DNA from: Macrostomum hystrix
Taxonomy: Eukaryota; Animalia; Platyhelminthes
Direction of reading: 5' to 3'
NCBI GenBank assembly: GCA_950097015.1
Contig: CATNEN010000034.1
Location: 1,178,001 to 1,242,000 of the forward strand
DNA length: 64,000 nt
In this document: positions 12,257-38,208 of the stretch, in pieces
How the letters are laid out: each line of letters opens with the position of its first letter
How positions within the stretch are numbered: position 1 is the first letter of the stretch
The notes under the pieces: model-generated
Told to the model about the DNA's origin: nothing
Databases searched by the model: none
Seen by the model: only the letters and a program-made list of their open reading frames with translations
Program-made: the position numbers and the translations under genes

Positions 12257-15200
12257 TACCGTTTCTTAGACCCTATCTCTGTCAACACGGGTGGCTTTAT
12301 TTAATCAGCTACTTTGTAGACCACGCCATAAATTAATTTGTTATACTCGTACTTTGATGTTCAAAAAGATTTATTTTTGCGCTAAAAATGGATCAATACA
12401 GGCTTCTGTGCAATATTGATATTTATAGCCTAGTTTTTAATTTATTATTTTATATACTTTCGCCTAATCATTTTTTCGCGCGTTTGAGTTCATCTTCTTA
12501 ATAAAAAATATGAAATTATTTATAACTGATTAACTGCTCGTTATCACTCTCGTTTTTCCGCTTTCGTACCAATGTAGAACTGCCTTAACATTTCATACCT
12601 TTCGAACACTTTTTCGAATTCATCCAACTAAACATAAAATGACATTGGCAAAATAGGCTGCTTGCCTGACCCAACCTAACAACCAACCAACAATTTAGTG
12701 CTAATTGCCTAATGCTTAAAATAATCAGCAATGTACGTACATTGTGGTCCCTCTTTCCGGTACCCGGTAAAATGCGGAATCCGCAACGGAATCGGAATGG
12801 AATAGTACGGTAAAACGCGGAATCCGCAGCGGAATGGTAAACTGCGGAACGAAGTGCGGATTCCGCACATTAAAGTAAAACGCGGAATGCGAAAATAAAA
12901 AAAGTAAAATGCGGAATGAAAACTAACTGAATTATACTTTTATTCATCACCTTATATTTAAAAAATCATCTGAAATTTATGTACATTTTTGCTGAACAAA
13001 TTGTTTTTCATTGTCACTATGACACTCAAATCAAATCTGTTGATCTTCCCTTAGCATGAAGATAGAGCTTTGGCAACTTATTTAAGGTAAATTCATACTC
13101 TGGAAGCGAAAGTGCATACTACGTACAATTTTTATATTTAATGTATTTCAAAAGTGCCCGCTGACATGTGGCGAGAAGTCATCCTACATCCTATTGCTGT
13201 CAAAAAAAATCGTAGCATTAAATGTGCATTTCTTAAAAAAAAATTCTATCCGAAACTTTAGGACAAGATAGATTTTAGCGAAGCTAAAATTACGATTTGC
13301 AAGACGCCTTTACGTTTTTAGTGTCAAGAAAGGCAATAAATAGTACAAGGAGCATGGAAAGTCAGATCAGTCAGATCAGTATGGAAGGTCAGTACCCTCT
13401 GGGAAAATCGCCGGCGAATCGCAAGCGAATCGTCAGCGAGACAGCGAAGTAGTGGCGACAATATTTTTTCTTCATTTCCCATATAGAACGTTTCAAAAAG
13501 CTGTGTTTGTCTGGAACTTTTCTTCCTGCAGCATAAAACATAGTTTTTCCACCTCGGTCGCATTGGCGAATCGTCAGCGGAACATTAGCGAAGTTTCGCC
13601 AGCGACTTTTCGCCAGCGACGGGACAGCGAATCGCTGGCGAATAAGCGCTTGATTATTTATTATTGGGGCTCTATTTTGCTAGTAAATATAAGAAAATGT
13701 ATAAAATTATTTGATTTCTCACTTGCATAACAATCTCTTCATTCTATTCTATCGAATTTACCACTGCTTGGGGGTATGAATCAGATAAATAATATATAGT
13801 GACTTCTCTAGGCAATAGAAAGTTAGGTATAACGAGTGGAACTCCTCCACTGGAGGACAAACCCAAGAAATTCGACTCCCCGAATTGTAATGTTGATGCA
13901 GTGTTTGAATCGCGAAGTCAAGGCATAGTATGGAAATTATCAATCTGGGCATCTTATATATATAAAAGTGAAAACTCTGTCTGTCTGTCTGTCTGTCTGT
14001 GTGCAACCTTTTGTCTTTATAGACGCCGAAACCGCTCAACCAAATCGCACCAAACTTTGCACATACCTAAAACCACCTACGCTGAGTGCAATAGGCTACT
14101 CAAATTCCCGAAAAATCATTTCCTTCCTGCTCAAAAGTGCAAAAAACTGCTCAAAAATCGTCAAAAAATCACTCAATTCGACATATCGTCGCCCCACTTT
14201 GTCAGATTTTCTCCAAATTTGATCCACTTACACTTTACATGTTTTCCAACAATGCTGTCAATTTTGAACATCTCTACTCAATCCAGAGCAAAGCTGCATC
14301 ATCTCAAAGTGAGTCACTTTTTGTTTTCCGAGGACAGCCACCCCAACTCCCCTCCGCCACTCTGCGGGCCAAATTTTAATACAGCCACCCCCTCCCTTCC
14401 CCGGGCGCCGAAGCCCCAGACTGTACATTGTATTTCAAGCCGTGAATGTACACAGCCCAAACCCCTAGACTGTCTACTGGCCCCCAAGCAGCACTGAGAC
14501 TGCATCTAACGGCCGCCGGCTAGCCGACACTTCCACTAGTCAAAAAATACTCGGCTAGCCGGGTGATTCCACGTGGACCCACGGGGGGCTAGCCTTACTG
14601 GCGGTGGCCTTGGGGGAATTGCATTCCTAACCCACGTGCATGTAGTAAGAAACTATATAAATAACTTATTTCCAAACATATAGGGAAGCCATTTTTACGG
14701 CGTAGTGTAGAATAACTTCGACTAAGTAGCTCAATGAGATACATGAGATACATACATGACAAAGCCATTTTTCAAAAGAAACCAAACTTGTCCCTAGAAC
14801 TCGAAAGAACTCGAAGCAGTGGCGAACGAATTTCGTATATGGAAAACTCTTGCATAATGAATTATATCTTTTTGGCTAGAACGGCAAGAACTATAATACA
14901 ACACAGGCATATTATATGCATTTTAGAAATGAAATAGATGACAGATCAATAGAAAGGAGGAATGAAAAGAATAAATGACAAAAAGTGATAAGTTTTATTT
15001 CGTCAATTACAAAAATCAAATGTAATTGGTAATCGAGCTAGGGACCTTCCGCATGCGAGGATTCAGCGCTACTCAACAATCTACACGGACTTGATAGAAG
15101 TGAAGGGAAAAAATGTTATTATACTGGCTGGTAGAAAGCCCAACTTAAAAGTTCTTTATCGTTCTTAATCGTTCTTTCATTCTTATTTATTCTATACCGT

Positions 15201-15858
15201 AACAGTTGAACCTAAAATCTGTAATTTAGAAGATACAAGAGAGAATAAGTATACAATTATAAATATAGGAATGAATAAGTAGAAGCTAGGTATGTAAGTA
15301 TGCATAATTTAAAAATTTGGCGCGTTCCGATGCACAAGATTGAGATTCTAAATAGAGGAAGAGGGACTGTGTTTCGTACATTAATAAGGTAATAGTTTGG
15401 TATCTTATCTCCCTCCCGAGTTCCGGCCAACAAATGAATTAGTAATGAATTTCGATTGCTAGGGACCATTGAAAGGTTACACGATCGATCATAACCAATT
15501 GTGAATTATTTGATATTTTTTTTTTCTGCAATCTAAATTCGAAATTTATTCATATACATTCTGTTTTTATTAAACGTTGCTTCATTTTGTGTTCATATGT
15601 GTTTATTTTGGTACGTCCCAATTCCTTCACGCAAACTAAACTCCCGGACGAAAAAATGTTACGTAAACACGTTAAAACAAAACAAACGCTAAAAACAAAA
15701 CGTAGAATTAGTAAAAAATCTCATTTTATTGCACAAAAATTAAAATTGCTTTAACAGTTTTTAGTTACAGACAAGCGCTTTATTGACTTGAAATTTAAAT
15801 TTTAAATTACAGTTTTTGCGGTTGTTTTATTCCTATCCAATATTCTATCCTATTCTAT

Positions 15859-16167
15859 TGTAGTATAACTGGGTTTGAAGGCCGCGAATTTAAACAGTTT
15901 TACTACAGCAATTTAACGTCTTCAGTTTACACGCCGCGCCGCGCCTTACACTTACAATCGATTGCAGCGCGCTTTTCAAACTGGTGCGATTATATTTTAA
16001 TTAGACAACGATTAAAATAATTTATAATTTATATTTGCATTATTTTCAAGGGTCATAAAAGTAGAAATTAATAACATAATAATGTTATTTGCAATCGCTA
16101 TAGTTACTGTATAGCAACAATTAAATATTTAGCGCAATTTTAAAAGAACATTTCCAGCCGCACTACA
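15859..16167. mobile_element. Solo LTR of the Gypsy family at 47928-54751
   Basis: 309 bp, TG...CA ends, 4-bp TSD CTAT, and 3 substitutions seen relative to the full element's LTRs. Confidence 0.92.
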
Positions 16168-16386
16168 CTATGCTATCCTAAACCGATTAGGTTACTTGTG
16201 TTAATTATCTACTGATACTACTACTAGATAATAGATCGATTCTTAAATCTTTAATTTATTTTGAAGTCTCAGTCAAAAGCATTGCGATTTTTTTGTCGCA
16301 GCGCATTTTTATTGCAAAATAGTAAATATAAAGTTTCTAATTAATTTAGATTAAATCGTCAAATTAGCTATTTGTTAAGGTAAGTA

Positions 16387-16951
16387 CCATAGTCCGGATC
16401 ATGTCGTTTACGCCGGAGATCTCCGGCGTAAATCTGGTTTGGGATCGGAGGCTGGCGTAAGTGCTTGGCGTAAGTATAGGCCAAAATGTGCCTTGGCGTA
16501 AGTGCTTGGCGTAAGTACATGGCATAAATCAAGTGGCGTAAATGTTAGCACCAATGAGATCATTCACGATCAAATGTATCACTATAGAACATAACACATT
16601 TGCGTTAAATATGATGTTTGCGTTAATTAGGAGCAGCATTAAAACAAAGTTCATTAAAATATTGCAGTTCGTATAAATGAGATAGCAGAATATCTATTGA
16701 AGGATAGCAAAAGTTTTTTTAGCTTTAAGATGCTTACTTTGATACTTGATTTAGAATTTGCAACTTGTGAGATTTTTAAACAGTTGCAACTTCTGAATTT
16801 AATTAATCACCGATTAACATGATTTGTGAAGGACCTTTTTTTGGGTGGCGTAAGTCAGAGGGACCTTTTTTGGTTGGCGTAAGTCTGGCGTAAGTGCCAA
16901 AAAATGTTGGATTTTTCCTCCGGCGTAAGTCCAGCATGATCCGGACTATGG
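16387..16951. mobile_element. MITE with 17-bp TIR and 8-bp TSD
   Basis: CCATAGTCCGGATCATG / CATGATCCGGACTATGG; TSD GGTAAGTA at 16379-16386 and 16952-16959; many internal GGCGTAA motifs. Confidence 0.88.
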
Positions 16952-17104
16952 GGTAAGTATGACTGTCAGTGCTTTCTATTCACTCATAGGCCCCTATTTT
17001 CCTTAAATATGTTGCCCGTAGTTGTATAGACAACTAATATAATTAATAATTTTTTATTAACCATGCTTTCAGGGCCTAGCTGTGTCCCATAGGAAGTGCT
17101 TATT

Positions 17105-17245: not shown

Positions 17246-18229
17246 GAATCCATGCTCAAAATTTATGCTTATCTGCTGGTGTTTTGTTTTGCAATCAGTC
17301 CTAAAAACAGACTGGCTGGCTGCCTATATCGATCACCCTCAAACTGCAGCCAATTAAACCTGCCACAGAAAATGAATTCCACTGAGCAATGTAGAGAGCC
17401 TGGCACTTGCTGTCACAGCTAAGACCTGTGATTTCCTTTGGCAAATCAAAATCCCTCTGGGCTTTGAGACAGACAGACCCATCAATTGAAAAGGCAAGAA
17501 TCTCATAACTTTAGTCTCCATGTAAAACGGAACAAAAAGGGAGCCTCACAGTGATATCACCTGCACAATTCTCTCTCACTAGCTGGCCTGAAGAATCAGC
17601 AACAAAAGTTTTAGTGTTGGAGCACAATGCAATAAATCTAGGATTGCCTAGACTTTCCAGCTCACCAGACTGGAATAAACATAATCCAACAATCATGTGT
17701 ACAAAAACATTCAAGACACAATAGTTTTGATGACTATAGTTGGTTGTAGTGTCTCAAACAAACTTTTCTTGTACAACACTTAAGCATGCAGATAACGCCT
17801 ATGCCATATCTATCCATAGTGTGGATCATGTAGTGCAGACAAGAATTTTCCTGTGTGTATTTTCAGAAGTGGCATGCAGTGGTGTACAAATTGGTCAGTG
17901 GCCTGCATAATGCACACTACATAATTACACTGGCATGGCAATGTTGCCAATGCATTTATGCATGCAGCAAAAAACATATTCAACTTTTTTTAAATCTATT
18001 GTATATTAACAGTATAAATAGAGAAACAAAAATTAACATTTGTCTCCACTTGATTTGTGTTGCCTATGGATGAGTTAGCTCTATGTAGCAATGTATGCAG
18101 TGCGCTGCACGTGGCCTACATCTTGAATGTGCATTGACTTCCAAATTGCAGGTACTGCTTGACTGTTTTCACCTGCCTGTGACCAGTCACTTTACAGATA
18201 TTGGCATTTGAGTAACCAACATCAGAAAA

Positions 18230-18385
18230 CTCCTTGCAGAGCTATTGCTGCGGCTGCCTCATGGAATGGTTGGAGCAGCAAATCAAACATGTCGACACCG
18301 GTGACGCCCATCTGAAGTGGTCCCAGACCCTCTGACTTGGCCACCAGCTGGAACACGTCCATGGCGGCAAGAAGGTCGCTGCTGT
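18230..18385 (-). pseudogene. Paralogous fragment of the methyltransferase-like gene at 28440-29320
   Basis: Reads SDLLAAMDVFQLVAKSEGLGPLQMGVTGVDMFDLLLQPFHEAAAA and closely matches 28960-29115 at the DNA level. Confidence 0.7.
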
Positions 18386-18626
18386 TAGCGGCCTGATTAT
18401 GCGAACATCCGATGGGATTCCAATTGCTCTAACAGACATTTGACATTGTTCTAAAATAAGAAAATGCAATGAAATTTACAGAATTTTATCATGTAGTCTA
18501 AAAATTTACTGCAACATGCTAACAAAATATGTGTTAAATTATATTCACCTCATTGAAATTGGAAGGAAATCCATGGAAGTAAAGATGAAAATTTTCAAAG
18601 TCGTTTCTGAAATATTTGTTTTTATA

Positions 18627-19650
18627 CGTAGGGTGTCCCAGAAATAGCGGGAAAAATCGATGCACAGGCAAACTGGTGCAACATAGTTTATTGAAACTTA
18701 CGTCACTGATATATAAACATTCAGCAGTTCTAATGCTTTTTAAATCAAGTAAATATGTCAACTCATTAAAAAGTTTTAGCTAAAATTAGAACAAGGGGTA
18801 AGGGGTAGAGTTACACCAAGTCAAGGCCAGCGGAATCGGTCACGCAGCATCGCCATTGCTGACCTACTTCTTTGACTTAGCGGCAGGGAGCCTCCATGAC
18901 AGACGCAGCGAGGAGGCGGCCGGTGCCGCCCATATCGCTAACCCCTGGCAGCATCGCCATCGCCGTCGACTGACGACTTTTCGACGAAGTCCCCCTTAGC
19001 TCGCAGCACTTAGTCCATCGCGTGAGAAGCGCATTGATGGCATCTGCATAAGCTCGACGCGGAATTTCGTGCAGCAGAACCCGCCTGAATTCACCTTCCA
19101 AGTTGTCGCGATGGTCAAAGATGCGCCCCCGCAGGTGCTTCTTTAACTGAGGGAAAATTGCGTAGTCGCAAGGAGCTAAGTCTGGTGAGTAGGGTGGGTG
19201 CGCAAGCAGATCAAAATTGAGTTCGTTGATACGATCAAGCGTTTTCTTGGCCGTGTGAGGTCGAGCGTTGTCGTGCAACAGGAGGTGAGGCTTCATCGCA
19301 GCCCTGCGCTTGTTGCGGATGTCTGATTTCATCTTAGTCAGCGTCTCCGTGTACCGGTCCGAGTTAACCGTGCTGTTAGGCCCAAGGAAGTCGATGGTCA
19401 GGGTTAGACCCAGAAGGGTCAGGTCAACCTTCTTGATCGAAGAAAAGGGTCAGCATGATCTTCTTGCAGTGCTGGTCTCGCTTCGCTTTCACAGGTGGAT
19501 CTGAACCCTTCAACGCCCACACCTTGCTTTCTGCTTGGTCTCAGGGTCAAAGTGCGGTATCCAGGTTTCATTGCCGGTCACCAGATAGGGTGTATCTGGT
19601 ATTCGCTCGTATTTTAAGCGAATTTTTTTGAAGTTCTGTAAATTCTGTAA
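18627..19650 (-). pseudogene. Tc1/mariner (DD34D) transposase remnant with its 3' TIR
   Basis: VTGNETW (first catalytic Asp changed to Asn), LLHDNARPH and PPYSPDLAPCDY with 34-residue D-D spacing. TA followed by CGTAGGGTGTCCC at 18625-18639. 5'-truncated, with an internal duplication and a stop. Confidence 0.9.
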
Positions 19651-20359
19651 ATTACCGAACTAGGCTACAACAAGCAAAAACAATTACAGTTTAGCATATG
19701 ATAGCTGCCTAAATTCCTGATGTACATAAATATATATCTCGGCTCCATTAGTAAAAAAACACTAACCTGGCAGTTCAATCGCCCAACAGGCTACCTTCTG
19801 CCGCATTCATTTGAGCTGAAATTGGTAGGGATATTATACTCAAATCGCCAGAAGTATAATATCGCCAACTTAAATACTAACGTTAGTTTCCCTTTTGATT
19901 AGTCAAGATTAGTAAACATAGAAGCACAGCCGTTAATTGGCTGCGAACTTTTAATATCTGATTCAATATTGGGAACACTTTGAACTGCAGACTTCACCTC
20001 TAAGTTGTTTAAAGTACTTATTGGTCTCAGTTGCTGCAAGCTGTTGAAACATGGCACAATGATTTCAACCGCTACAACATATTGAACAGAAACTACTTAA
20101 AAATAAATGAAAACGAAAAGTAATAAATTCCAGATCTACCTATCAATCAGACGAGCCAAGAGCTTTCACCTTTAAAGGCATTTTCCGGTAGATTATTTAA
20201 CTCTTAGTCGTTATGATTATATTATTATATATTTTGCGGTGCCCTAAAGTAGTGGATACAAATAATAAGGATTCAAATAGTCCTGGTCAAACATGATATT
20301 TGTTGCATTATTAAACTTCATTAAATCAAATTAAAGTAAGTACATTTTACTTATTTCAG

Positions 20360-23039
20360 ATGTACCGTTTTAAAACCCTGAAGTAAACACGCAAGGTAAC
20401 TTACGTTTCTGGCCTGCGTGGACGACCAAGATCAACAAAATACTCTGCCGGTAAAGACTGTTGGAATCAACATAGTGCTAAATCTGCAGTTCAAAACACT
20501 TCTGGCACGTCCAGTTCTGTTTTTCAAGAAGCAGATTTCGACTTTGAAAGTTCGTCCGATTGCTTTATCGAGTGGGAAAATTATGATTCATTTGTTGAAA
20601 ATTGTTCACCGAGTTATCGGAAGTCATTTATTTTGAGCCAGTGCATACGCTGCCGAGAAAACCAAGGTATTTTTCGCTGTATAACCTGTAACGTGGATCT
20701 ATGTGCTGACTGCAAGGAAGTAACTCATGGAGATTTCGTTGCTCATAAATTTCTACTCTGGAATGTAAGCAAACCTACATATATTTAGTGATCTTTAGCT
20801 CATAAGTGCACTTTTTTAAACGAAACAAGAAAAAAAGATCTCAACAGCAATTTTAGCAATCTATGCCAATCAAAAATGTAAACTAAAATGTAACTTCCTC
20901 CCGCAGATCGATCTACTGATGTTTAGTGAGGAAACTTCCGGGGCAGCCATATCTTTTCCAAAACTTTACTGCTGTAATGACTGTGCGAGAGGCAAAGTAT
21001 TTAATGCAGCGAGCAACGTGCAGTTAATTAACATAACCGGAAGCGTCCAGGCAAAAGTTTTTACATGTGCAGCATGCGACACCTGTTGTGCTTTGCTGTC
21101 TCAGGGCTACTTCCCTGCAACGGCTTCATCAGATGGCGAATGTTTAACTTTTTTTTTCCTTTAGTTTCCTTTCACTTCTTGATTCAATGTGCATGGATGG
21201 ACAGTTGCCTATGCATAGAGCAATTCACTCATTCTTTAAGGGCACAGTCGTGGGACAAGGTTGCTGGAGTCCAGACTTAGCGAAGAGTGTCTACCAACGT
21301 ATTCAGCGGTACGGTGTACTTTTGCGCTTTCGCGAGTTGCAAAACCATAATTCATGTTGGCCAAAAACATGCCTAAGTTGCCCAGAAAAAAACTCTAAAC
21401 GCAAGACTGTTCTATGTGGTGATGGTCTCTTCGGTTGGCAGCAATTTGCAGCGTCGGGTGGAAAGCAGAAGGATTTACCAGGTGATGGTCGTATTTTGCC
21501 TGAACCTCTTATTTACGTAGATGGAAATTCTCAACAAGGTTCTACTGTCCATCATCCTGAGCCTGACAGTTGTCCTAACTGGAGAGCTGGTAGTACAACT
21601 AAAGAGACCTCGAGAGGTGCCTCACGGAACAACGTCTATGGATTCTTTGGTCTGTTCTGCAGACACAATAGGCTTGTGACAGGGTGTAATATAAATACTC
21701 CAGGAGAGCGTCTTTGCTATCCAGAGGAATGCCTGCTTCATTATTTAAAAACGACGCCAGTGTCAAAGCATCTACTGTTTATTTATGACGTTGGTGAGTA
21801 ATCCGATTTAACATGCGTACAGTTTAAATCATATCATTATAATTCATACTTCGTGCAAAATATTTTTAACAGTTTTCCAAAAAATATTGAAAGTGGCATA
21901 AAAAGTTTTCTTGCTCGAATATACTCGAAATCGTTTCAATTTCAGGTTGTCGTGTCTCCAATCGGGTCAAGTCTATCGTTGCACAGTCCGGGGCTGATGT
22001 CCATAGCAGCATGTGTGCTGTTAATGCGTTTCACGTCCTTGGACATAAAACTAGCTGTCAGCTGAATTTATCCGTACGCGTTACTCCGGGAGCTGGCTTG
22101 TGTGACGGTGAGCATTCTGAACGAGCCTGGGCTGCCTTAAGACCGTATGGAAAGTTTTTTAAGTACATGCGGAATGATCGGAGGACAATGTCCATATCCC
22201 ATATTTTACACAATTTCAATGCTCAACAACTTTTAAATGCACATGTGTGGTTTGCGCAAAGGTTGAAATTGATTACAACTACCTCTACAGCAATAAAAAA
22301 CGAAATTCAAGCTCTAATGCATGAAATGGCTGTCTTAAAAAATTCTGGTTGTATTGACACTCGCTTTGACGTATCGGATGAGCAGATTCTGGTCTTAGGC
22401 CAGCAATGGCATATGGAATCAATTTCGGGTCACGCCTCTCTTGAAGAAGATACGCTGGGCTCTTTAAGGTCAGTTGCCACTCAAAGAATATATTGGCTTA
22501 GAGAACTTGGTACTTCCACAGGTCAAAGTCGAACAAAAAGTTGTGCTCGTAGAGTTTTTAGTCTAACTTCGGAAATGCAGAAACTCTATTCCAAATTGCC
22601 ACAAAACGATAGACCAACTTTTACAGAACTTCAAAACCCTAAGCATAGCTTCTATTCCGGAATTGCTAAAAACGATTTTACAGGAAGCTTTCGTAGACGC
22701 GCCATTGACGTAAGTCATAAAAAAGAGAGGCTTGATGAGGAAAAAAACTTTCTTTTTGATGAATGGCGTGATATTCAGAAGCGTATTCAAGAGCATTGTA
22801 TAACTTTAGAAGGTCAACCAGGTCTACCGGCACACTTTCACCGACTGTTTCAGATTATTTACCGGCAAATTGAAAGTGTCCCTATAGCAATGCTCTCAGT
22901 CAACCAAGACTCAATCCAAAGTTTAACTCCCACGGTTGACAGTTTAGACAAAAATGATTCTAACGAACGACTGGACGATCTAGATAACTCATTCAATTCA
23001 GCATCAGATGATTCTGATGATGACGAGACCGCGTGTTAA
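20360..23039 (+). pseudogene. KDZ (Kyakuja/Dileera-like) transposase with an N-terminal CxC zinc cluster; 3 exons (20360-20764, 20907-21793, 21946-23039); two lesions
   Basis: CIRC..FRCITC..LCADC..H..AH..W, then GYFPAT, LCGDGLF, YDVGC, AFHVLGHKTSCQ and DGEHSERAW. Two GT-AG introns join the exons in phase. There is an in-frame TAA at 20384-20386 and one extra T in a T9 run near 21149-21157. Confidence 0.82.
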
Positions 23040-23140
23040 ATATATATTAGCAGCTAAGTGCATCAAACCAAAAAGTCTCATAATATTTAAGTCAAAATGC
23101 AACACTTTACTATTAAGTATCTGCTATCTGACACAAAAAA

Positions 23141-23837
23141 ATGCTGGGACTGTCAATGTGCATTCATTGCTTTGACATTTTTCCCTCTGCAAAAAACTAA
23201 TGCTGGGATTGTCAATGGGCATTCATTGCTTTGACATTTTTCCCTCTGCATAAAACTAATGCTGGGATTGTCAATGGGCATTCATTGCTTTGACATTTTT
23301 CCCTCTGCATAAAACTAATGCTGGGATTGTCAATGGGCATTCATTGCTTTGACATTTTTCCCTCTGCATAAAACTAATGCTGGGATTGTCAATGTGCATT
23401 CATTGCTTTGACATTTTTCCCTCTGCATAAAACTAATGCTGGGATTGTCAATGTGCATTCATTGCTTTGACATTTTCCCTCTGCATAAAACTAATGCTGG
23501 GATTGTCAATGTGCATTCATTGCTTTGACATTTTTCCCTCTGCATAAAACTAATGCTGGGATTGTCAATGTGCATTCATTGCTTTGACATTTTTCCCTCT
23601 GCATAAAACTAATGCTGGGATTGTCAATGTGCATTCATTGCTTTGACATTTTTCCCTCTGCATAAAACTAATGCTGGGATTGTCAATGTGCATTCATTGC
23701 TTTGACATTTTCCCTCTGCATAAAACTAATGCTGGGATTGTCAATGTGCATTCATTGCTTTGACATTTTTCCTCTGCATAAAACTAATGCTGGGATTGTC
23801 AATGTGCATTCATTGCTTTGACATTTTCCCTCTGCAT
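23141..23837. repeat. 59-bp tandem array, about 12 copies
   Basis: ATGCTGGG recurs at 23141, 23200 and 23259 and onward. It is the inverted counterpart of 32874-33274. Confidence 0.95.
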
Positions 23838-25348
23838 TTGTCAGATAAATTTTTCTTTCACGAACGTGACGCGCCTCATCGTGGCGTGAAAGTGAACAGT
23901 GCGCGTTTCAATCTTTTGCACTGGCCAAGACGTCACTACTAGTTAGTCTAGGTGTTTTACAACCTTCTGTACTGAATATCCACGAACCAATCACTTCATA
24001 TATTTTATTCTATCTATTCACATTCTTTATACCCAGAAATTTGCTGTTATAGTAGACTCCCTCTCACAAAGTTGACCTATTTTGTCTTGTTTCCGGTACG
24101 TAAATCAAGAAATCAAAGCAATGAACGCTACTTTTAGTTTAAGATTTAGTATCATTTGCGATTCAGCTCTCAATCTGCGTGTTCTCAATATAATTTCCTG
24201 CTTTCATTCATTTTTTCCCTATGTTCCGTGGTGCACAACTGCTGGACTGGAGAACAATCGCACTCGGCACCAAAAGATGTAGTGGCACTTTTAGGCTTAA
24301 ATACAGGTAAAAGATGCTTTTAATTACTTAAATTTGTGACTTATTTATTGAATTTTATATTCAAGTTCAATTCCCACCCTGCCAGGAAATGCGAACTGGA
24401 CTCGACAGTTTAGATTATTCGGAGGCAGCCTTTCAAAAACAGTGGCGAAGCCTGTCTGTCACGAGCAGAAACCGTAGCCGGCCGTCAGTGTCGGCCACCT
24501 TCGCGATGCGCGGTTTCTCAATGTACGACGGAAGATAATTGCATATTATGCACTGTCTGCATCTACCCATCTAGCCGACTAGCGGGCCTGCCATCCCACC
24601 AATGCAGCGCTGGAATACTGAGTACTGGTTGCTAACTGCAAAGATACATGCTTCTCACCTTAATTTGATATTATTTTGCGCATTCTCAAGTCCGTGTACT
24701 CTGTACTTACCCCCTGTTGAGCAGTTATTGCAATATGCACATTTTTCTTATTTACGAGTAGCTAGTAAATATACAAATTGTACTTCGTCTTACTGCTTGC
24801 TAATAAATAAGTAGCTTACGAAATGCGCCCGATACCATCCCGTATAAAGCCAGTCTTAAATGGCGCATATTTTGTTACACCTACTGTGAGAAGCCTACTA
24901 TGAAAGTGGTTGATAGTATATAACGACGTGTTATTCTTTGGAAATTATATGCTTAACATATCGCCATTCCAGCATTAAAATAATTTTGTGTACAATTTGT
25001 TACTTAATAAAAAATTAATCAATTTTCGATATGTACAGCAAGCAAACCGATGCCTTAAGTACCCAAGTTCAGCCGACTGTACTTTTGAAAAAACAAGAAA
25101 GTGTTTCGTGTTTAAGATTTTAACAGTAACGGCATTGAGGTCGATTGCTGGTAATGTACTGTACGTATCGAGTACAATCGTAACAAGTAGCTCTACATGT
25201 ACCTCAATCTCAGCAAAAATTAGATTAATTGGATGTCAGTATAGAAGTGGATTTCTCATCTCAATCTGATACGAATTTAACGCCAAAAGCCCCAGAACTC
25301 TGTTTCCTGAAGTGCAAGTGTAAATTAATTGTCATGATAGTCGAATTT

Positions 25349-27787
25349 AAGCAGTATGTATTCAACTCAGTGTAACCACTGATGAATCCGTAAATGTACC
25401 CGCACTTCAACAGTTCAGATAGTCAACTATAGGCAGTATATATTCAACTCAGTGTAACCACTGATGAATCCGTAAATGTACCCCCACTTCAACAGTTCAG
25501 ATAGTCAACTATAAGCAGTATATATTCAACTCAGTGTAACCACTGATGAATCCGTAAATGTACCCCCACTTCAACAGTTCAGATAGTCAACTATAAGCCG
25601 TATATATTCAACTCAGTGTAACCACTGATGAATCCGTAAATGTACCCCCACTTCAACAGTTCAGATAGTCAACTATAAGCAGTATATATTCAACTCAGTG
25701 TAACCACTGATGAATCCGTAAATGTACCCCCACTTCAACAGTTCAGATAGTCAACTATAAGCCGTATATATTCAACTCAGTGTAACCACTGATGAATCCG
25801 TAAATGTACCCCCACTTCAACAGTTCAGATAGTCAACTATAAGCCGTATATATTCAACTCAGTGTAACCACTGATGAATCCGTAAATGTACCCGGCCACT
25901 TCAACAGTTCAGATAGTCAACTATAAGCCGTATATATTCAACTCAGTGTAACCATGCACTGATGAATCCGTAAATGTACCCCCACTTCAACAGTTCAGAT
26001 AGTCAACTATAAGCAGTATATATTCAACTCAGTGTAACCACTGATGAATCCGTAAATGTACCCCCACTTCAACAGTTCAGATAGTCAACTATAAGCAGTA
26101 TATATTCAACTCAGTGTAACCACTGATGAATCCGTAAATGTACCCTCACTTCAACAGTTCAGATAGTCAACTATAAGCCGTATATATTCAACTCAGTGTA
26201 ACCACTGATGAATCCGTAAATGTACCCCCACTTCAACAGTTCAGATAGTCAACTATAAGCAGTATATATTCAACTCAGTGTAACCACTGATGAATCCGTA
26301 AATGTACCCTCACTTCAACAGTTCAGATAGTCAACTATAAGCAGTATATATTCAACTCAGTGTAACCACTGATGAATCCGTAAATGTACCCTCACTTCAA
26401 CAGTTCAGATAGTCAACTATAAGCCGTATATATTCAACTCAGTGTAACCACTGATGAATCCGTAAATGTACCCCCACTTCAACAGTTCAGATAGTCAACT
26501 ATAAGCCGTATATATTCAACTCAGTGTAACCACTGATGAATCCGTAAATGTACCCCCACTTCAACAGTTCAGATAGTCAACTATAAGCAGTATATATTCA
26601 ACTCAGTGTAACCACTGATGAATCCGTAAATGTACCCTCACTTCAACAGTTCAGATAGTCAACTATAAGCAGTATATATTCAACTCAGTGTAACCACTGA
26701 TGAATCCGTAAATGTACCCCCACTTCAACAGTTCAGATAGTCAACTATAAGCCGTATATATTCAACTCAGTGTAACCACTGATGAATCCGTAAATGTACC
26801 CCCACTTCAACAGTTCAGATAGTCAACTATAAGCCGTATATATTCAACTCAGTGTAACCACTGATGAATCCGTAAATGTACCCCCACTTCAACAGTTCAG
26901 ATAGTCAACTATAAGCCGTATATATTCAACTCAGTGTAACCACTGATGAATCCGTAAATGTACCCTCACTTCAACAGTTCAGATAGTCAACTATAAGCAG
27001 TATATATTCAACTCAGTGTAACCACTGATGAATCCGTAAATGTACCCTCACTTCAACAGTTCAGATAGTCAACTATAAGCAGTATATATTCAACTCAGTG
27101 TAACCACTGATGAATCCGTAAATGTACCCCCACTTCGACAGTTCAGATAGTCAACTATAAGCCGTATATATTCAACTCAGTGTAACCACTGATGAATCCG
27201 TAAATGTACCCTCACTTCAACAGTTCAGATAGTCAACTATAAGCCGTATATATTCAACTCAGTGTAACCACTGATGAATCCGTAAATGTACCCCCACTTC
27301 AACAGTTCAGATAGTCAACTATAAGCCGTATATATTCAACTCAGTGTAACCACTGATGAATCCGTAAATGTACCCCCACTTCAACAGTTCAGATAGTCAA
27401 CTATAAGCCGTATATATTCAACTCAGTGTAACCACTGATGAATCCGTAAATGTACCCCCACTTCAACAGTTCAGATAGTCAACTATAAGCAGTATATATT
27501 CAACTCAGTGTAACCACTGATGAATCCGTAAATGTACCCTCACTTCAACAGTTCAGATAGTCAACTATAAGCCGTATATATTCAACTCAGTGTAACCACT
27601 GATGAATCCGTAAATGTACCCCCACTTCAACAGTTCAGATAGTCAACTATAAGCAGTATATATTCAACTCAGTGTAACCACTGATGAATCCGTAAATGTA
27701 CCCTCACTTCAACAGTTCAGATAGTCAACTATAAGCCGTATATATTCAACTCAGTGTAACCACTGATGAATCCGTAAATGTACCCCC
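25349..27787. repeat. 82-bp satellite array, about 30 copies
   Basis: TATTCAACTCAG occurs at 25441 and 25523 and onward. Units are nearly identical, with two recurrent variable sites. Confidence 0.96.
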
Positions 27788-28439: not shown

Positions 28440-29320
28440 TAAGATCTGCGTCTAGCACCAGCAGCAGATAATCAACAACAGCGTTAATAGCAAAAATGAC
28501 AACACAAATTATTGCACTTTTAGCAGCTGCGGCAGCCAGTCGGTGACGAAACTTGTCTTAGAGCCGCACCTCGGCATAGCTCAGCAGGATAAGGTCGTAG
28601 CAACATCCGTAGTCCCACGTAGTCTCCGTAGTCTGCTAGTTAGTAATAAAAAATTGAAAATTATGAAAAATATATTCAAGTTTTTTTATAAAATAACTAA
28701 AATTAATAAATAATAAATAAATAGAGCAAAGAAGTAAAATCAGGGACATTCCATCGTGGGCCAATTCCTTATATACTTATTTATAACAAACATATTTATA
28801 ACGAACGTTTCAATAATATATAAAATACAAACTACAAACCAAGATTAAATTAAGTTAACGGATGCGCACCTGACATGACTTATAGACTTTTCTTTGGGTT
28901 TTAGTTGTCCCTGGCTGTGGCCCAGGTGAAACTGCTCCGGGAAGCTGCTGATTAGCCCCTGCAGAGCTAACGCTGCGGCTGCCTCATGGAATGGCTAGAG
29001 CAGCCAATCAAACATGTCGACACCGGTGACGCCGCGCGCCCATCTGAAGTGGTCCCAGACCCTCTGACTTGGCCACCAGCTGGGACACGTCCATGGCGGC
29101 AAGAAGGTCGCTGCCTGGGCCGCAGCCGAGTGACAGGACCTCATAGCTGGTGCTGCTGGTGTTTGAGCCCATGATGGCGTCATAGAGCTCAGCTTGAATC
29201 AGCTGGCGAATGGACAACCGCTTCTTCGGGAGCTCGCACACTGTGTATGCGGCCCTAAATTCACTAGATTGGTAGAACCCTAAGTTTCCTTTGTCGCCTG
29301 ACTGACTGGAAAACAAAAGT
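28440..29320 (-). pseudogene. Class I SAM-dependent methyltransferase-like pseudogene
   Basis: In order on the minus strand: VLSLGCGPGSDL (motif I), VTGVDMFDW (motif II-like), YDLILLSY (28576-28599) and LLVLD. It carries a 7-nt insertion frameshift and TAG/TAA stops. Confidence 0.68.
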
Positions 29321-30134
29321 AGAATATTTTACTAATTTCAACAAAAATGTTTTTAAAATATATTTTGTGAGCACAGGCTATGGAATCTGAGTCTCTATAG
29401 CACCTGAGTCTATCCTATCTAGGCCAATGAGATCTGAGTCTATGCCATGAATTTCTATCTGAGTATGAAAAGGCAAAATAATGAAAATAGGAGACAAACA
29501 CATCAAACACATTGAGATTAACCCGGCTTAATTATATAATAATTAATTAAGAAGTCATATTGCTTAAAAAAACACAGAGGATAAGCGAGGCTGCTTACTA
29601 ATAGAATTGATAAGGTGATGCTGCTTACTAATAGAATTGATAAGGTGATGCTGCTTACTCATAGAATTGATAATGTTTAACGGGTTTCAAACAATTTTAC
29701 TAAAGCACTCCCGCTGGCGCACCGGCTCGATGTCATTGTCGATGACGAATATTCGGCTGCCAAGTCTTAACACGTGAAACAAAGCAACTATGATGATTTC
29801 TAGAGAAGCATCATAGTTGCTTCTATGATGCTGCAGCAGCAGTCAGTCAGCAGTCAGCCAGTCAGTGACTGATCTACCAGACTGGATGCTCGTTGACACT
29901 ACGTACTTTCCCTCCGAGGTCCACATCGCCGAACTGGCTGGCGGGCTGGAAAACAAAAGTAGAATATTTTACTAATTTCAACAAATATGTTTTTAGAGAG
30001 GCAGTCGATATCGAAATAATTATGGAAATTCGTCAGTAATAAGATAGGGCTTATAGGGCCCGACTTTCTCATCGTCTGGCAGTGTACACTATCGCTGTGC
30101 CCCTAAGTCTTCTCTCCGCGGCTGCGTTCAAAAT

Positions 30135-30210: not shown

Positions 30211-31274
30211 ACCCGGCCCTAACCAATGTTACAAGCTCACTGAGTAGGAATTTTGTAGCTTATCTCAGCTGTTTACTACACAAAATGATTGAAGCAAACA
30301 ACAATTTTTTTCTAATTGTTGCTTTATTTGAATGGAATAAAATGAGCATATGATGAGCAGCGATAAGTAAATAACAAAACAGAGCATTAGTAGAGCTAAC
30401 TAACATTAACACAATACAAGAACGGTACGTTTTTTGTATTTTACTACTGCAATATCTATAAGAAAGTATTAAAATAACAGTGCACTATATCTGAATAACA
30501 ATTTTATATTAATTAATAAAGGTTTGTACTAGCTAACTATATTTTTGTAGAAAGCTTTGCACGTTAAAAAAAAGAACGGGAATTTAATTTGGCATAGAAT
30601 TTAATTAGCGAGACATTGTAAACATATATGCTCATACTTAATTACATTCGTGGAGCTTAGTAAAATAACTTTCGGAGCACTAACACAAGCTCCAAAATTT
30701 ATGGCAATCATTTTTCATCTCCATTTTTGGATATTTTCATTTTGAATTAGTGCTACTGATACTGATACTGATACTGGCACTGCTACTGACGTGTCAGAAA
30801 GACGTGGCAGTGTCTATGGAAAGTGTGAACGAACTGTTCTGTGTTTTATTGTTTAAAATCATTTTCATAGATTTTTGAGCTTGTGTAACACTACCCCTGA
30901 CCTTCGCGCACGTTTCTTGCTGCAGCTCCTGAATAGAAAAAGATATGAACATGATTTTAATTTTGTTTTCTTTCTGACAAAATTTCCTTTCATTTGACAC
31001 CATGGGCGTGAAATTTCATGGCTCCGTTGAAGAGCAACGTTGGACATTCCGGGAACTTTTGGGACACCCCTCGTAAAATTTATAAAAAATCGAATGCTTT
31101 TAGTTCAGAAAAACACACGCAAAGGATGAATGTATAAGTACTTATAGGCATTGTAGTTTACAGACAAGCAAGCGGCGACAAAAATCGCAGTTTTTATCTT
31201 ACTGAGTACGGAGATACACCCGAATTAGTAGTAGTAAAAACTAAAATTATTAATCGTTTAAAGTCATTTTTACC

Positions 31275-31487
31275 ATTGTTGCCAATGCCACCGGTGCCGC
31301 TCTCGCCTAGCAACAGCCGCGAGTCGTCCATCAGGCTGGGCTGCGGTCTCTTAGCAACCAATGCGCGAGGCAGCTTGTCGTGGTACAACTGATAGACGTC
31401 ACGGTCGGCCGGACAGCTACAACGGAAGGCCTCGCATTCGTACATGGCCGAATAATAGGCTTGCAGATGCTGCAGCTCTGATGGCAC
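31275..31487 (-). CDS. GC-rich putative exon of unknown function (possibly an upstream exon of the methyltransferase-like gene)
   Basis: Open frame MPSELQHLQAYYSAMYEC...GGIGNN ending at a donor-like G|GTAAAA. No recognisable domain. Confidence 0.35.
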
Positions 31488-32117
31488 ATCGAAGTCGCGA
31501 TAGAACTGAAATGTATCGACGATGCGAACAATTGAATCACGCCTGTCTCATCTCTCTGATCTCACCCAAGACGTCTCATCTCTCCGATCTCACCTCACCC
31601 CTGTCTCGTCTCTCCGATCTCACCTCACCCCTGTCTCATCTCTCCTCTGTCTAATCTGAACACTGTCACATGCATCTTGGCCCTGATTCATGTCTTCACT
31701 GTCTCATATCTTCCCTGTTTTATCTCCCGTCTTATCTCTCCTCTGTATAAAACTGTGCCGTGTCTTACATCTTCCATGTCACATCTCTCGCCTGTCTCAT
31801 CTTTATCCTGTCTCATCTCTTTCCTATCTGATTTCACAGTCAATACCGACCCGCATTCATTTTAGAATCTATCTTTAGCCCGCTGGAGCTAAATAGACTC
31901 TGAGATTAAAAAAGCATTCGAACCCTGGCAGACAAACAGGGAATTCTACCTTAGCGGCCATTTTCAGATGATGCAGTTTAGGCATGAGTTGGCAATCCGC
32001 GTAGGTTAGCTCATCTGAGAGCAGGTAGCGACAACTTAGCGACAATTTGTACATGTGGTTCGGACTGCGCGGCTTCGGTCGATACTTAAGGCGCAGAGGC
32101 TCAACTGGATCACACCA

Positions 32118-32779
32118 TCAGCAACATCACCTCATCAATTCTATGTGACAGCAGCATCATATTATCAATTCTATAAGTTAGCAACATCATATTATCAATT
32201 CTATAAGTCAGCAGCATCATATTATCAATTCTATGTGACAGCAGCATCATATTATCAATTCTATGTGTCAGCAGCATCATATTATCAATTCTATGTGACA
32301 GCAGCATCATATTATCAATTCTATGTGTCAGCATCATCATATTATCAATTCTATAAGTCAGCATCATCATATTATCAATTCTATGTGTCAGCAGCATCAT
32401 ATTATCAATTCTATGTGACAGCAGCATCATATTATCAATTCTATGTGTCAGCATCATCATATTATCAATTCTATAAGTCAGCAGCATCATATTATTAATT
32501 CTATGTGACAGCAGCATCATATTATCAATTCTGTAAGTCAGCAGCATCATATTATCAATTCTATGTGTCAGCAGCATCATATTATCAATTCTATGTGACA
32601 GCAGCATCATATTATCAATTCTATAAGTCAGCAGCATGATATTATCAATTCTATGTGACAGCAGCATCATATTATCAATTCTATAAGTCAGCAGCATCAT
32701 ATTATCAATTCTATGAGTCAGCAGCATCATATTATCAATTCTATAAGTCAGCAGCATCATATTATCAATTCTATGTGAC
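32118..32779. repeat. 30-bp satellite, about 22 copies
   Basis: Unit ATTATCAATTCTAT(GTGAC/AAGTC/GTGTC)AGCAGCATCAT. The YYQFY and MMLL ORFs arise from this repeat. Confidence 0.95.
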
Positions 32780-32873
32780 GTCTTGGCAAGTGCAAAAGAT
32801 TGAAACGCGCACTGTTCACTTTCACGCCACGATGAGGCGCGTCACGTTCGTGAAAGAAAAATTTATCTGACAA

Positions 32874-33274
32874 ATGCAGAGGGAAAATGTCAAAGCAATG
32901 AATGCACATTGACAATCCCAGCATTAGTTTTATGCAGAGGGAAAAATGTCAAAGCAATGAATGCACAGTGACAATCCCAGCATTAGTTTTATGCAGAGGG
33001 AAAAATGTCAAAGCAATGAATGCACATTGACAATCCCAGCATTAGTTTTATGCAGAGGGAAAAATGTCAAAGCAATGAATGCACATTGACAATCCCAGCA
33101 TTAGTTTTATGCAGAGGAAAAATGTCAAAGCAATGAATGCACATTGACAATCCCAGCATTAGTTTTATGCAGAGGAAAAATGTCAAAGCAATGAATGCAC
33201 AGTGACAATCCCAGCATTAGTTTTATGCAGAGGAAAAATGTCAAAGCAATAAATGCACATTGACAATCCCAGCA
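32874..33274. repeat. 59-bp tandem array (inverted relative to 23141-23837), about 7 copies
   Basis: The unit ATGCAGAGGGAAAAATGTCAAAGCAATGAATGCACATTGACAATCCCAGCATTAGTTTT is the reverse complement of the left array unit. Confidence 0.95.
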
Positions 33275-33445
33275 ATATTTGACAGAATATAGACTCTAGT
33301 CCCTGTAAAGATAGCAGCTCTCTGCACAGTGACTATTTTCGGCTGAAAACATTGAAAACCATAGCATATTGCATCTTAAATATACTATCTAATATTAAGC
33401 TATTGGCGTCGTGTGGGCCTCTAATAATTGTTTCATATTAAAATT

Positions 33446-34698
33446 TCATTCCGTTTGTCTAGTATCTAGTCTAAGCGTAATGTTGGGTGCAGAGCTCGCC
33501 CCATATAAAGATGACTGAGCAAGTCTATTTGCGTCATTTACAAATGGAGTATTGAAAGGATTAAAATTTGTTGAACTTTCACTTTCGTGAAAGTGTTGCC
33601 GATATTTCGCGGTTACAGAAGTCAGTGCCGTATCTCCTTCACTCTCCAAGTCACTTGTGGTGATATTATGGTAGTCATCGACTTGTAGCCCTTCTTCCAT
33701 CACTTGAGCCTGTTGTTGATGCAGATGAGAGGCACTTATTGGTGTATCATGATCAGGTGATACATCAATGGAAACTGAATTACAAAATGTCAGTTCTGTA
33801 TTTTCGAGTTCCTTTAAAATGGCTACACATTTTTCTCTGGATAAGTGATGGGGGTCCTTCAATTCTGGAATGAATTTGCAACTTCTTCCGACAAGGCTCC
33901 ATGGAATCTTGCCGTCGAAACCTGTCGCTGTTTTATGTGCAATTTTAGCCCTTAAAAAAATTTCTTGTCGCATTTTTTTCACATCGCTATAAACAGAAGC
34001 TAGGTTTCGTGGCTGACTAGTTTCAGCAAGCTGAACATCACTGCGCTCATTTGCCATATTTTGTTGTTCTGCTTTTTTCGCGTCATCCATTAGTTCTGCT
34101 ATTTTATTTATATGGGGCTCCATAGCGCTTCTAACATTAGGCGATATGTCATTGGACGTGGTAAAATCGGTTCCACGTCGGGTTAATATAATAAGTACGT
34201 ATGTCTCACCTGTACGTTTTAAATCATTTACCACTTTTCTTATTTTCTTCTGCTGATTTTTAGCTTCTTCTTGAAGACGTCGCTTTTCTTCGATTGGCAG
34301 ACTCATATACTCGCGACGCAGTTCGGCGGTCCACACTAGAATTAAAGGAAGATTTGAATTTTTAAATTTTACCAAAACATAGTGACTAATTATTATATTT
34401 ATTTATTTCTAGCTTTTATGTAAATTAATAGATGCACCCCACAGAGAATATAACATATGATGTAGCCTAGAAAATACAACAATATTCAAGACTTTTAGAA
34501 AAAAACAATGTTATGCTGCATAAATGGACTAAAATGTTTTGTATTAAAAATAATGCTGCCTACTCATACATTACTATTTCTTGAGTTCTAGTCTTACTAT
34601 ATATCCCTGTAGTATATTTTTAAGTAATACTGACCATAAGAAAACTTACCTGCCTTTCCTTTGTTTTGCAAAAACACATTGGCACCAGTTAGAACCAT
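33446..34698 (-). CDS. Intact 2-exon gene (34698-34650, 34335-33446), about 310 aa, degenerate HMG-box-like N-terminus
   Basis: The spliced product starts MVLTGANVFLQNKGKAVWTAELRREYMSLPIEEKRRLQEEAK. The GTAAG donor and AG acceptor join in phase 1. The exon structure is well supported; the HMG resemblance is by eye only. Confidence 0.65.
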
Positions 34699-35386
34699 CT
34701 GTGTGTAAGAAAAAAATTAGAATTACAAAATAAAACCATTTTATTGCACTATTTCTTATGCACTTTAATTTAAGACTCAAACTGAAATACGAAGCTTTAG
34801 TGCCTACTTTATGCTTTAAAATTTGAGTTAATTTAAATTTAAATTTCCTTTGTTTCTTTTTTGGTTTGATAATCTCAATTTCTTATAATATAATCAGTAC
34901 TGACCATAATAATCTTATTTCATCTTGTAACTCTTGTATTATGTATGCCTGTACCATAATAATATAAAAATATTATAGGGGTAGGGCCTAGTGAGAATAT
35001 TATGTCACAAAAGGGTTGCTGTTCTATAAAAAGGTGTACAAGCGCATGGCATAAATTTACTTTTGTTTGCAAAATTATTTTTATGAATAAATTTAAAATT
35101 GCGCTAAATGAAACAAAAAGTGCAGTGCAGAAACAATTCAGTTTATAGTATTCGTAACAATTCAGTTCAATTCAGTTCAGTTCAGGTTAGTTTAGTTTAC
35201 TTGGCTGTTATATAGCCACAGGGTAGTAGTGACAAATCCAGTAAAAAATGCTACAGAATGCTTGGAAGTTGGAAGCTTGGAAATATTGCCTGATTGAAGT
35301 CACTAATAAAGGTTAGAAATGTAGCTGCGATTCTTTCTGCTCTTTGGATGCTGCCGAGCTGGTTATGGCCAAAGACAATTATGAAA

Positions 35387-35870
35387 GGCAGTGCTTATCC
35401 CCACGGTACCGTAGAAATAATTTTTGTCTTATTCCTACGGTACAGTGGGAATAATTTCCTGCTTATCTGCACGGCACACTGATGAGATAGCTGTCCTATC
35501 TTCAACATAGCTCCAGAGATGCGTAAAGTAATAGACTGGATTATAGGCTTAGAAGGCTTGAGCTATAAGATTATAAAAATACACACTTCAGTTGTATTCT
35601 TTTAAATATATAAATAATAGTAATATATATTTTATATACTTAAAAAGCCACCGTATTGGTTAACTAATTGCAAAAAAAGCAGAAAACTTTTATTTGTTTA
35701 CTTGCTTTTAAAAACCGGAAGAAAAAAAAATTGCAGTCACGATAAAAAGATAGATGATTAGGACAGCTATCTTATCAGTGTGCCGTGCGGATAAGCAGGA
35801 AATTATTCCCACGGTACCGTAGGAAAAAGACAAAAATTATTTCTACAGTACCATGGGGATAAGCACTGCC
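35387..35870. mobile_element. Mutator-type MITE
   Basis: TIRs of about 125 bp starting GGCAGTGCTTATCCCCA; 9-bp TSD ATTATGAAA at 35378-35386 and 35871-35879. Confidence 0.9.
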
Positions 35871-38208
35871 ATTATGAAAAATTCCACACCACATTATTTA
35901 TGCCAGGTATATTAATTATTATTGTTGCAAGGCAGGTAGTAACGTTGTACAATTTTGGGAGGAGCAAAAAATTGTTTTGACATGCACTCTACCACTTTTC
36001 TGACTATGGCATGGTAGGGGGTTAAAGCTATAACAAATCTGATTAAAAATGAAATCAGCACATCAAAAAGCCTTAGTAGCCACAGATTTATCATCCTATC
36101 AAAACAAGAACTATTTTATATAGACCTAAAGTTCAAGAGACCCTCGCCTCCCCGCTGGGTCCATGGACCACCCTGCAGCTAAGTCTAGTAAGTCAAAGTT
36201 CAAGAAGCCCAAAAAGCAAGCAAAGTTAAAATGTATTAAAAACTTGAAGTCTATACTTTATAGCAATTATCATTTTGGTTTAAAAAATTTAGCTAGTCAG
36301 CCAGACCACTGACTGATAATTTGGATATAAGTTGCATTAGTAACACTCTTAGTAGTTTAGTCTTAGGTTTTAACTAACATCTATTATTAACTTTACATGT
36401 AACATTTTCATTGTGTCAGTTAATAAATGTTGAAAATCAAAACAATTGGATTGGGATTTCGATTTGCTGGCATAAGTAGTACTAGTAACTAAATTTAAAA
36501 CGAAAAAACATTTGTTATAACCTTTGTTATAAAAAAATTAATAGAAAATTTCAATACTTAAATTGACAAAGTAACTTTAAAAAATACCTTCTCTAGACAC
36601 AGTAAAGTACAATCTGTTATGGATGTAATGATATCCTAAGTGTAAAATACCAACTAAACTAGTTTGGTGGCGCAGCGCATTAGGGCGCGTTTTTTATTTA
36701 AACAATTCTAAACTATTGAATAAAAACTTAAATAAAAAATTATACTACAACGTAACTAAGAAAATCTTTTTTTGAGAAGTACTAATACACTTTTTTTAAT
36801 GCGCATACTTAGTTCTGTATAATTATTTGTTATACCATACGCACGTAAAGTTATGAAATTGACGTAAAATCCGGACTATTCAGACTCGTTTTTGACATGT
36901 AAAAAGAGTATTTATAAAAATACAATTCTTTCTTTCCATGTAACACTAAAAAAGTGACGAATTCTATAGACAAATGAATACAATTATATTGAGAATGATT
37001 GCAGAAGGACTGCGGGCAATGGCACATCATTTAGTGACACTAGACCCACAGCGAGCTATTTTTTGCTAATACCTTATTCGGATCATTGTCATAAATAATT
37101 ACGAGTACATAATCAGTCTTACTTGTTTCTGTTTCGTTTCTTTTAAGGCACTGTAGAGTTATACCGCTATACTTTCTGGAATTTTAGAACTGATTCTGGT
37201 TCTGGAATTCTGGGTAGAATGAATGACTGATTCTGATTTCTGGGTAGAATGAAAAGCCTATTTTACGGGTTGGAGAGCTGGGTAAAACAGCTTTAATTTA
37301 ATTTTTTAATTAACTGCCCGCCGTCAAAAATAAAGCCAATATAATCTAGCAACCAAGTTATATAAATATGAGTAATTTAAAATAAAAATAAATATGATTT
37401 GATTTTGTTTTTTTCTTATAACTAGTATAAATATGTCTTTCTATGCATGTATAACTCAACCTGTGTGGCGTGTTGATAGAGAGAGCGCTCTGTTTGAGTG
37501 TTACGAGGGGGGTTCGAATTTTTTCCGTATTATTTTTACTAATGAATTTTTTTGATCCGATATTTTATTGTGATGCTAAATATTTACTAATTATTTCGTT
37601 TTATAGCCATTTTATACAGTGGATGTGTTGTAATTTTAGTTCTGGCTTCTGATAAGCCATTAAGCCCTCGCTGTTAAGGTGGAAGTATCATTTGTTTGAG
37701 ACGGGGTGATCACTTCTTGGTTCTTACTTAGCACGATAGAAAAGCGTCATATATCTATTACACGTAAAATCCACTTAATCAGTAAGTCCCATCTAAACTC
37801 ATTCAGCTTTAGTTGTATTGTATTAATTAGTATGAACTGTGGTTTGCTTGCCTATATGTTTGGAAATAAATGATTATCAGTGCAAAGGAAAAATATTTAG
37901 ATAGCCAGTTACATACTTCATATTTCATACTTTCTACTTGCAGTAGACGAGTAGCATGATCCATGTAAAATTTATCGGAAGTCTACCCCCTACCCCCTAC
38001 CCCCCCGTGGGTCCACATGGATTCACCCGGCTAGCCGAGTATTTTTTGACTAGTGGAAGTGTCGGCTAGCCGGCGGCCGCGAGCTGGAGACTGAGTGCGG
38101 TGAGTGCGGTGGCGTCCCAGTGCGCAGGGCTCTCCGGTCAATATTTCTCTCCAGCCAGCCTGGGATAGAAGAAAGAGAGAGGCTGGCGTACAGTGCTTTG
38201 CTAAAATA

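Follow-up and report, generated by a model that had tools for sequence, protein, structure and literature searches.

Is the large insertion at positions 14503-38086 of this stretch of Macrostomum hystrix DNA (contig CATNEN010000034.1, positions 1,178,001 to 1,242,000; 64 kb in all, hereafter the window) a DNA transposon moved by the KDZ transposase gene that lies within it, and do its other sequences constitute functional cargo? An earlier note on this DNA had described a single DNA transposon bounded by terminal inverted repeats (TIRs) with a 7-bp target-site duplication (TSD), and had inferred that the KDZ gene was its cognate transposase, accompanied by an accessory gene and methyltransferase cargo. 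We consider it highly likely that the element is a KDZ-superfamily DNA transposon of the DDE, cut-and-paste type, represented here by a young copy that is already defective, and that it belongs to a flatworm-specific clade whose transposases unite a B-box, a putative CxC cluster, and a KDZ domain.

A Single 23,584-bp Unit Inserted into a Repeat

The boundaries of the element were located from its termini, the flanking duplication, and empty sites elsewhere in the window:

14496-14502, no strand: left TSD copy GAGACTG, present once in three uninterrupted paralogous sites
14503-14592, plus strand: left TIR, starting with CATCTAAC-GGCCGCC and holding three GGCTAGCC boxes; homologous to Macrostomum lignano termini
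37997-38086, minus strand: right TIR, ending in ...GGCGGCC-GCGAGCTG and holding two GGCTAGCC boxes
38087-38093, no strand: right TSD copy GAGACTG
45166-45172, no strand: paralogous empty site in host repeat copy D; the others are at 5209-5215 and 2479-2485

The element is 23,584 bp long and is flanked by a perfect duplication of GAGACTG, the 7-bp length of which is unambiguous because a one-base shift of either boundary breaks it. The host sequence is itself a repeat, of which three further, uninterrupted copies occur in the window, each with a single GAGACTG. At these three sites, all reading ...CACTGAGACTGAGTG..., matches to the left and right flanks overlap by exactly 7 bp, and therefore the whole 23,584 bp was inserted as a single unit with 7 bp duplicated. 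The boundaries, the 7-bp TSD, and the description of the element as one TIR-bounded DNA transposon are thus upheld. The earlier assignment of the host repeat to the Helitrons agrees with a 5'-TC directly after CTAG, and the Helitron identity was checked only that far. The target is surrounded by a short palindrome, CACT-GAGACTG-AGTG (14492-14502 and 38087-38097), a single case from which no preference can be claimed.

The TIRs are ~90 bp long, close to the 86 bp given previously, and are 96% complementary across 83 bp. Their outermost eight bases agree at five positions (CATCTAAC on the left, CAGCTCGC on the right) and are followed in both by GGCCGCC, such that the element terminates in 5'-CA...TG-3' (CATC... 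and ...GCTG). The internal motifs noted earlier were likewise recovered: ACTAGT is found in both TIRs, and all five occurrences of GGCTAGCC in the window fall inside the TIRs, at 14518, 14553, and 14587 on the left and 38029 and 38064 on the right, with a spacing of ~35 bp.

The KDZ Gene Is a Very Recent Pseudogene

Between the TIRs, the predicted KDZ gene is indeed present:

20360-23039, plus strand: KDZ transposase gene, with exons 20360-20764, 20907-21793, and 21946-23039; ~795 aa; B-box, putative CxC, and KDZ domains

Two open reading frame (ORF) pieces scored above the Pfam gathering score for the KDZ domain (PF18758; 28.1 and 54 bits, cut-off 26.6). Upstream of this domain, Pfam placed a B-box zinc finger, together with a CxC cluster whose matches to CxC1 (E = 0.004) and CxC2 (E = 0.08) were weak and under the gathering score, with the conserved Cys columns present. 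For evidence of splicing, contigs of public runs (X9, X5, and X1) were aligned to 17500-23400, the types of X5 and X1 being uncertain (X9 is labelled RNA, X5 is listed as '?', and X1 as 'DNA?'). GT..AG joints at 20764>20907 and 21793>21946, corresponding to introns 20765-20906 and 21794-21945, were found in contigs of X9, X5, and X1. One X5 contig also carries 24 non-genomic letters joined exactly at the AG acceptor before the ATG (20359-20360), which suggests that the KDZ mRNA has either a further 5' exon upstream or a trans-spliced leader.

The gene in the present copy is dead, owing to a nonsense codon and a one-base frameshift. The first lesion is a TAA at codon 9 (20384-20386), where all run contigs have an A at 20384 and hence encode Lys. 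The second is one extra T in the T-run at 21149-21157, which comprises nine T in the window and in the X5 and X1 contigs, and eight T, restoring the frame, in one X9 contig. This difference in length between runs is most simply explained by different copies, with slippage as the alternative. Read with X at both breaks, the protein model of ~795 aa is 44.8% and 46.2% identical, end to end, to two M. lignano proteins (P0001 and P0002). It keeps all 31 of the near-invariant columns, defined as those at least 95% conserved among 20 relatives, including the candidate catalytic D, D, and E and the residues D308, D430, E487, and E490 (model numbering). Given only two lesions, the conserved columns, and the splice joints in the run contigs, the KDZ gene is a pseudogene of very recent origin, and its family is transcribed and spliced.

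The only close relatives of this protein are two M. lignano families. When 1.84 billion representatives were searched exhaustively with HMMER, four proteins fell below 1e-30, and all the named ones came from M. lignano; the next nearest KDZ proteins were from sea cucumber, amphioxus, and cavefish, with fungal ones more distant. In a tree, the element's KDZ protein clusters with families 1 and 2 of M. lignano (100/100 support). A profile of 20 KDZ proteins matched three proteins only, all from M. lignano and none of them a labelled Kyakuja, Dileera, or Zisupton reference, and the exon 3 piece gave no match in a word-indexed protein search.

Homologous Termini Lie Upstream of KDZ Genes in M. lignano

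Seven M. lignano loci from families 1 and 2 were compared, and termini were located at six of them (four in family 1, two in family 2). Among the family 1 copies, similarity starts exactly at CAGTTTATGGCCGCCCGTTAGCGG at four loci with unrelated upstream flanks, giving a left terminus, CAGTTTATGGCCGCC..., that is precise at all four. The two family 2 loci, also with unrelated flanks, share the left terminus CAGAGCATATTCCCAGGCTAGCC... The left ends of these relatives begin with CAG and sit 5-9.5 kb upstream of the KDZ genes, and the elements, measured from the left terminus to where each fetched locus stops, span at least 18-22 kb.

These termini are homologous to those of the M. hystrix element. 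The family 2 terminus aligns with the element's TIR over ~110 nucleotides (80.6% identity across 67 nucleotides, E = 4e-9), with three GGCTAGCC boxes in register, 34-35 bp apart, along with the blocks AAAAATA and GTGGRYCCAC. Family 1 has CAG-N5-GGCCGCC in common with the element's right end and carries CGTTAGCG in place of GGCTAGCC. Across the three families, ends and transposases have diverged in step, a pattern that cognate pairs should show and a passenger gene should not. Judged by homologous termini upstream of its closest KDZ relatives, the KDZ gene is very probably the element's cognate transposase, and what had been inferred from one locus now draws support from six M. lignano loci in two families with different flanks. 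At the locus of the sister-lineage protein P0004, flanking TIRs were not found.

Two of the family 1 elements (L004 and L001) lie tail to tail on M. lignano contig NIVC01001431.1, in inverted orientation with their left ends ~41.8 kb apart; the sequence between them contains 387-bp satellites, and they have no common TSD.

Satellites, Nested Elements, and Gene Fragments Occupy the Interior

Apart from the KDZ gene, the following features were delimited within the element:

15855-16170, no strand: nested ~314-bp repeat resembling a miniature inverted-repeat transposable element (MITE); copies at 47925-48239 and 54443-54757, 98.7% identical
18225-18428, minus strand: short methyltransferase-like fragment, of which 18232-18382 is a 91% paralogue of 28957-29114
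18880-19659, minus strand: nested Tc1/mariner-type transposase fragment, C-terminal part of DDE_3 only
23135-23936, plus strand: module on the 3' side of the KDZ gene, made of 12 copies of a 59-bp satellite and ~100 unique bp; recurs inverted at 32775-33280
25336-27787, no strand: 82-bp satellite, 30 copies
28848-29328, minus strand: methyltransferase-like pseudo-fragment, containing a VLSLGCGPGSDL motif and disrupted by two or more frame changes
31197-32099, minus strand: CLIC (chloride intracellular channel) gene fragment, pieces 31878-32099 and 31197-31547
32118-32777, no strand: 30-bp satellite, 22 copies
32775-33280, minus strand: corresponding module on the 3' side of ORF2, inverted relative to 23135-23936
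33449-34402, minus strand: orphan ORF2, open over 318 codons and convergent with the KDZ gene
35387-35870, no strand: nested MITE with its own 9-bp TSD, ATTATGAAA, at 35378-35386 and 35871-35879

Satellites account for ~4.6 kb of the element, comprising the 82-bp (30 copies), 59-bp (12 and 7 copies), and 30-bp (22 copies) arrays and smaller ones. The nested MITE at 35387-35870 (~484 bp) has inverted ends of the GGCAGTGCTTATCCCCA type, and its 9-bp TSD is perfect. Both the KDZ gene and ORF2 are followed by the same module of 59-bp repeats and ~100 unique bases, in inverted orientation. These inverted arms were considered as the ends of a nested transposon, and since no TSD was found at their outer edges they were treated as internal modules. 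Within the first module (23213-23400), the 59-bp satellite reached 30-100x the contig word depth of the KDZ exons (runs X1 and X5), and hence this satellite is abundant elsewhere in the genome or transcriptome.

Insertion of Tc1/mariner elements generates TA duplications. A Tc1/mariner transposase as the source of the element's ends was ruled out, the TSD being GAGACTG and not TA, and only the C-terminal DDE_3 fragment being present.

The CLIC pieces, absent from the earlier note, are two exon-like stretches separated by a ~330-bp intron, matching CLIC residues ~150-260, the C-terminal third of the protein, with E values between 1e-4 and 1e-6. On their upstream side the 30-bp satellite truncates them, and they thus represent a host-gene fragment captured at the DNA level. 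No Rfam family and no tRNA was found within the element, nor did it contain a homologue of the SET gene or of the other ORFs of the M. lignano elements.

Outside the element, a protein encoded at 49554-51212 on the minus strand shows 32% identity across 308 aa to an ORF of 1375 codons situated outside the KDZ element in M. lignano (L003:110-4234), and is probably another mobile-element protein. The sequence at 9545-9702 has 82% protein-level identity to a short ORF inside M. lignano family 1 elements (L001:16653-16943).

Functional Cargo or Captured Scraps?

Given this content, the element might be a genuine cargo carrier, with ORF2 and the methyltransferase-like sequence acting as functional companions, for example as chromatin or epigenetic modifiers that protect it. 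Parallels are offered by the TET genes of fungal KDZ elements and by the M. lignano relatives, in which a SET-domain gene is located just downstream of the KDZ gene; no SET homologue, however, is present here. Language-model features of the stretch at 28848-29328 point toward Rossmann-fold methyltransferase clusters (best named cluster 0.89), a lead only, whereas the stretch itself is a single exon-like piece of ~160 codons with at least two frame breaks and neither a Pfam match nor a PDB sequence match, and a 150-bp scrap of it recurs at 18232-18382. The methyltransferase cargo proposed earlier is therefore a degraded, frameshifted fragment that occurs twice, and not a gene. ORF2, the proposed accessory gene, is a 318-codon open frame in DNA of 33-37% GC, but it is an orphan with no detectable relatives, including in a word-indexed protein search, and no confident fold, its single-sequence AlphaFold model being poor (pLDDT 44). 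With the CLIC piece also reduced to the C-terminal third of its gene, we regard functional cargo as unlikely. The remainder of the element is made up of satellites, later nested insertions, pieces captured from host genes (the CLIC fragment and the methyltransferase-like exon), and the orphan ORF2. None of this can be shown to be functional cargo, and the large size of the element owes much to satellites and nested elements.

A rival view makes the KDZ gene a passenger and assigns the TIRs to another transposase, such as a P-like or hAT7-like one, which would likewise generate TSDs of 7-8 bp. It draws on the single complete copy seen and on the fact that a superfamily cannot be told from a 7-bp TSD by itself (hAT7, PMC12730594). 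It is extremely improbable, since the nearest KDZ genes of M. lignano have homologous termini upstream of them, in two families diverged in step with their transposases, and since the truncated mariner is the only other transposase domain among the ORFs tested in the element.

Under the favored reading, a defective KDZ transposon with its own former transposase gene, the enzyme would bind the GGCTAGCC boxes that recur in each TIR at a spacing of ~35 bp, probably via its N-terminal zinc modules. By the general DDE mechanism, it would be expected to cut at the 5'-CA...TG-3' ends, which would then be joined to target DNA cut with a 7-bp stagger. The present copy would be mobile only if an intact relative supplied the enzyme.

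Several points weigh against this reading. Only one copy has been seen with both ends. For the M. lignano elements, BLAST and fuzzy pattern searches reaching 10 kb downstream of the KDZ genes yielded no right end and hence no TSD length. If X1 is DNA, its spliced contigs could derive from processed copies, although the RNA-labelled X9 has both joints by itself. Finally, ORF2 is long and open in AT-rich DNA and may be a real second gene.

With these points in mind, the locus provides base-exact boundaries and a 7-bp duplication for an animal KDZ transposon. Together with the M. lignano loci, it offers a first DNA-level clue to the recognition site of this clade's transposase, for which the conserved GGCTAGCC boxes are candidates, and the question of the cognate transposase can now be answered by binding and excision assays. 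It also calls for caution, as the large size and the 'cargo' of such elements may be mainly satellites and gene scraps.

Comparison with Known KDZ Systems

Good descriptions of KDZ transposons exist for fungi and, in the form of Zisupton, for fish. Our literature search found no paper on KDZ elements in flatworms and few animal examples with proven ends. Kyakuja elements of Agaricomycotina fungi have 7-bp TSDs and CA..TG termini and are described as lacking TIRs (Kojima 2025, PMC12730594), Zisupton and Dileera have 8-bp TSDs (PMC12730594, PMC11343200), and the Cryptococcus elements KDZ1-3, at ~10 kb with TIRs and 8-bp TSDs, have been called 'gigantic' (PMC11343200).

Zisupton, from fish and other hosts, and the Dileera-type Cryptococcus KDZ1-3 resemble the M. 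hystrix element in their KDZ catalytic domain, TIRs, and multi-exon transposase genes. They differ in their 8-bp TSDs, as given for Zisupton in the earlier note and in agreement with PMC12730594, compared to 7 bp here. Zisupton additionally has CxC4 and SWIM domains, in place of which the present element has a B-box and weak CxC1/2-like matches only, and the element is more than twice as long as Cryptococcus KDZ1-3.

By its ends, Kyakuja is the closer match. Both have a KDZ transposase, a 7-bp TSD, and 5'-CA...TG-3' termini, and both are multi-kilobase elements with extra genes and repeated short palindromic boxes near their ends (in the fungal consensus sequences). Unlike Kyakuja, the present element resides in an animal, has clear ~90-bp TIRs where the Laccaria families are described as lacking them (PMC12730594), encodes a transposase with an N-terminal B-box, and contains no TET/JBP gene. 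The 7-bp TSD, which had earlier been taken as a hint of novelty, is no departure from the KDZ class, since this length and CA..TG termini are already published for fungal Kyakuja (PMC12730594).

The nearest system is that of the M. lignano KDZ families (PAA68011.1, PAA74961.1, and copies), uncharacterised 'B box-type domain-containing proteins' whose transposases are 45-46% identical to the element's over their full length. The elements have homologous ends (5'-CAG, GGCCGCC, and GGCTAGCC or CGTTAGCG boxes ~35 bp apart), a gene 5-9.5 kb from the left end, and long internal satellites. They differ in gene content: downstream on the KDZ strand, the M. lignano elements have a SET-domain gene that is missing here, and they lack ORF2 and the CLIC and methyltransferase-like pieces. 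A broader and rather doubtful proposal is that macrostomid flatworms harbor a distinct, as yet uncatalogued clade of very large, Kyakuja-like KDZ transposons (at least 18-24 kb) that have conserved ends of this kind, with GGCTAGCC-type boxes, and that repeatedly carry or capture chromatin-related genes, such as SET in M. lignano. If true, this clade would be an animal counterpart of the fungal TET-carrying KDZ elements, and the present copy a decayed member minus its chromatin gene. Compared against the class features, the element has both of the end features of Kyakuja and neither the 8-bp TSD nor the CxC4/SWIM domains of Zisupton. It belongs to the known KDZ class, and what is new is the evidence for its cognate transposase.

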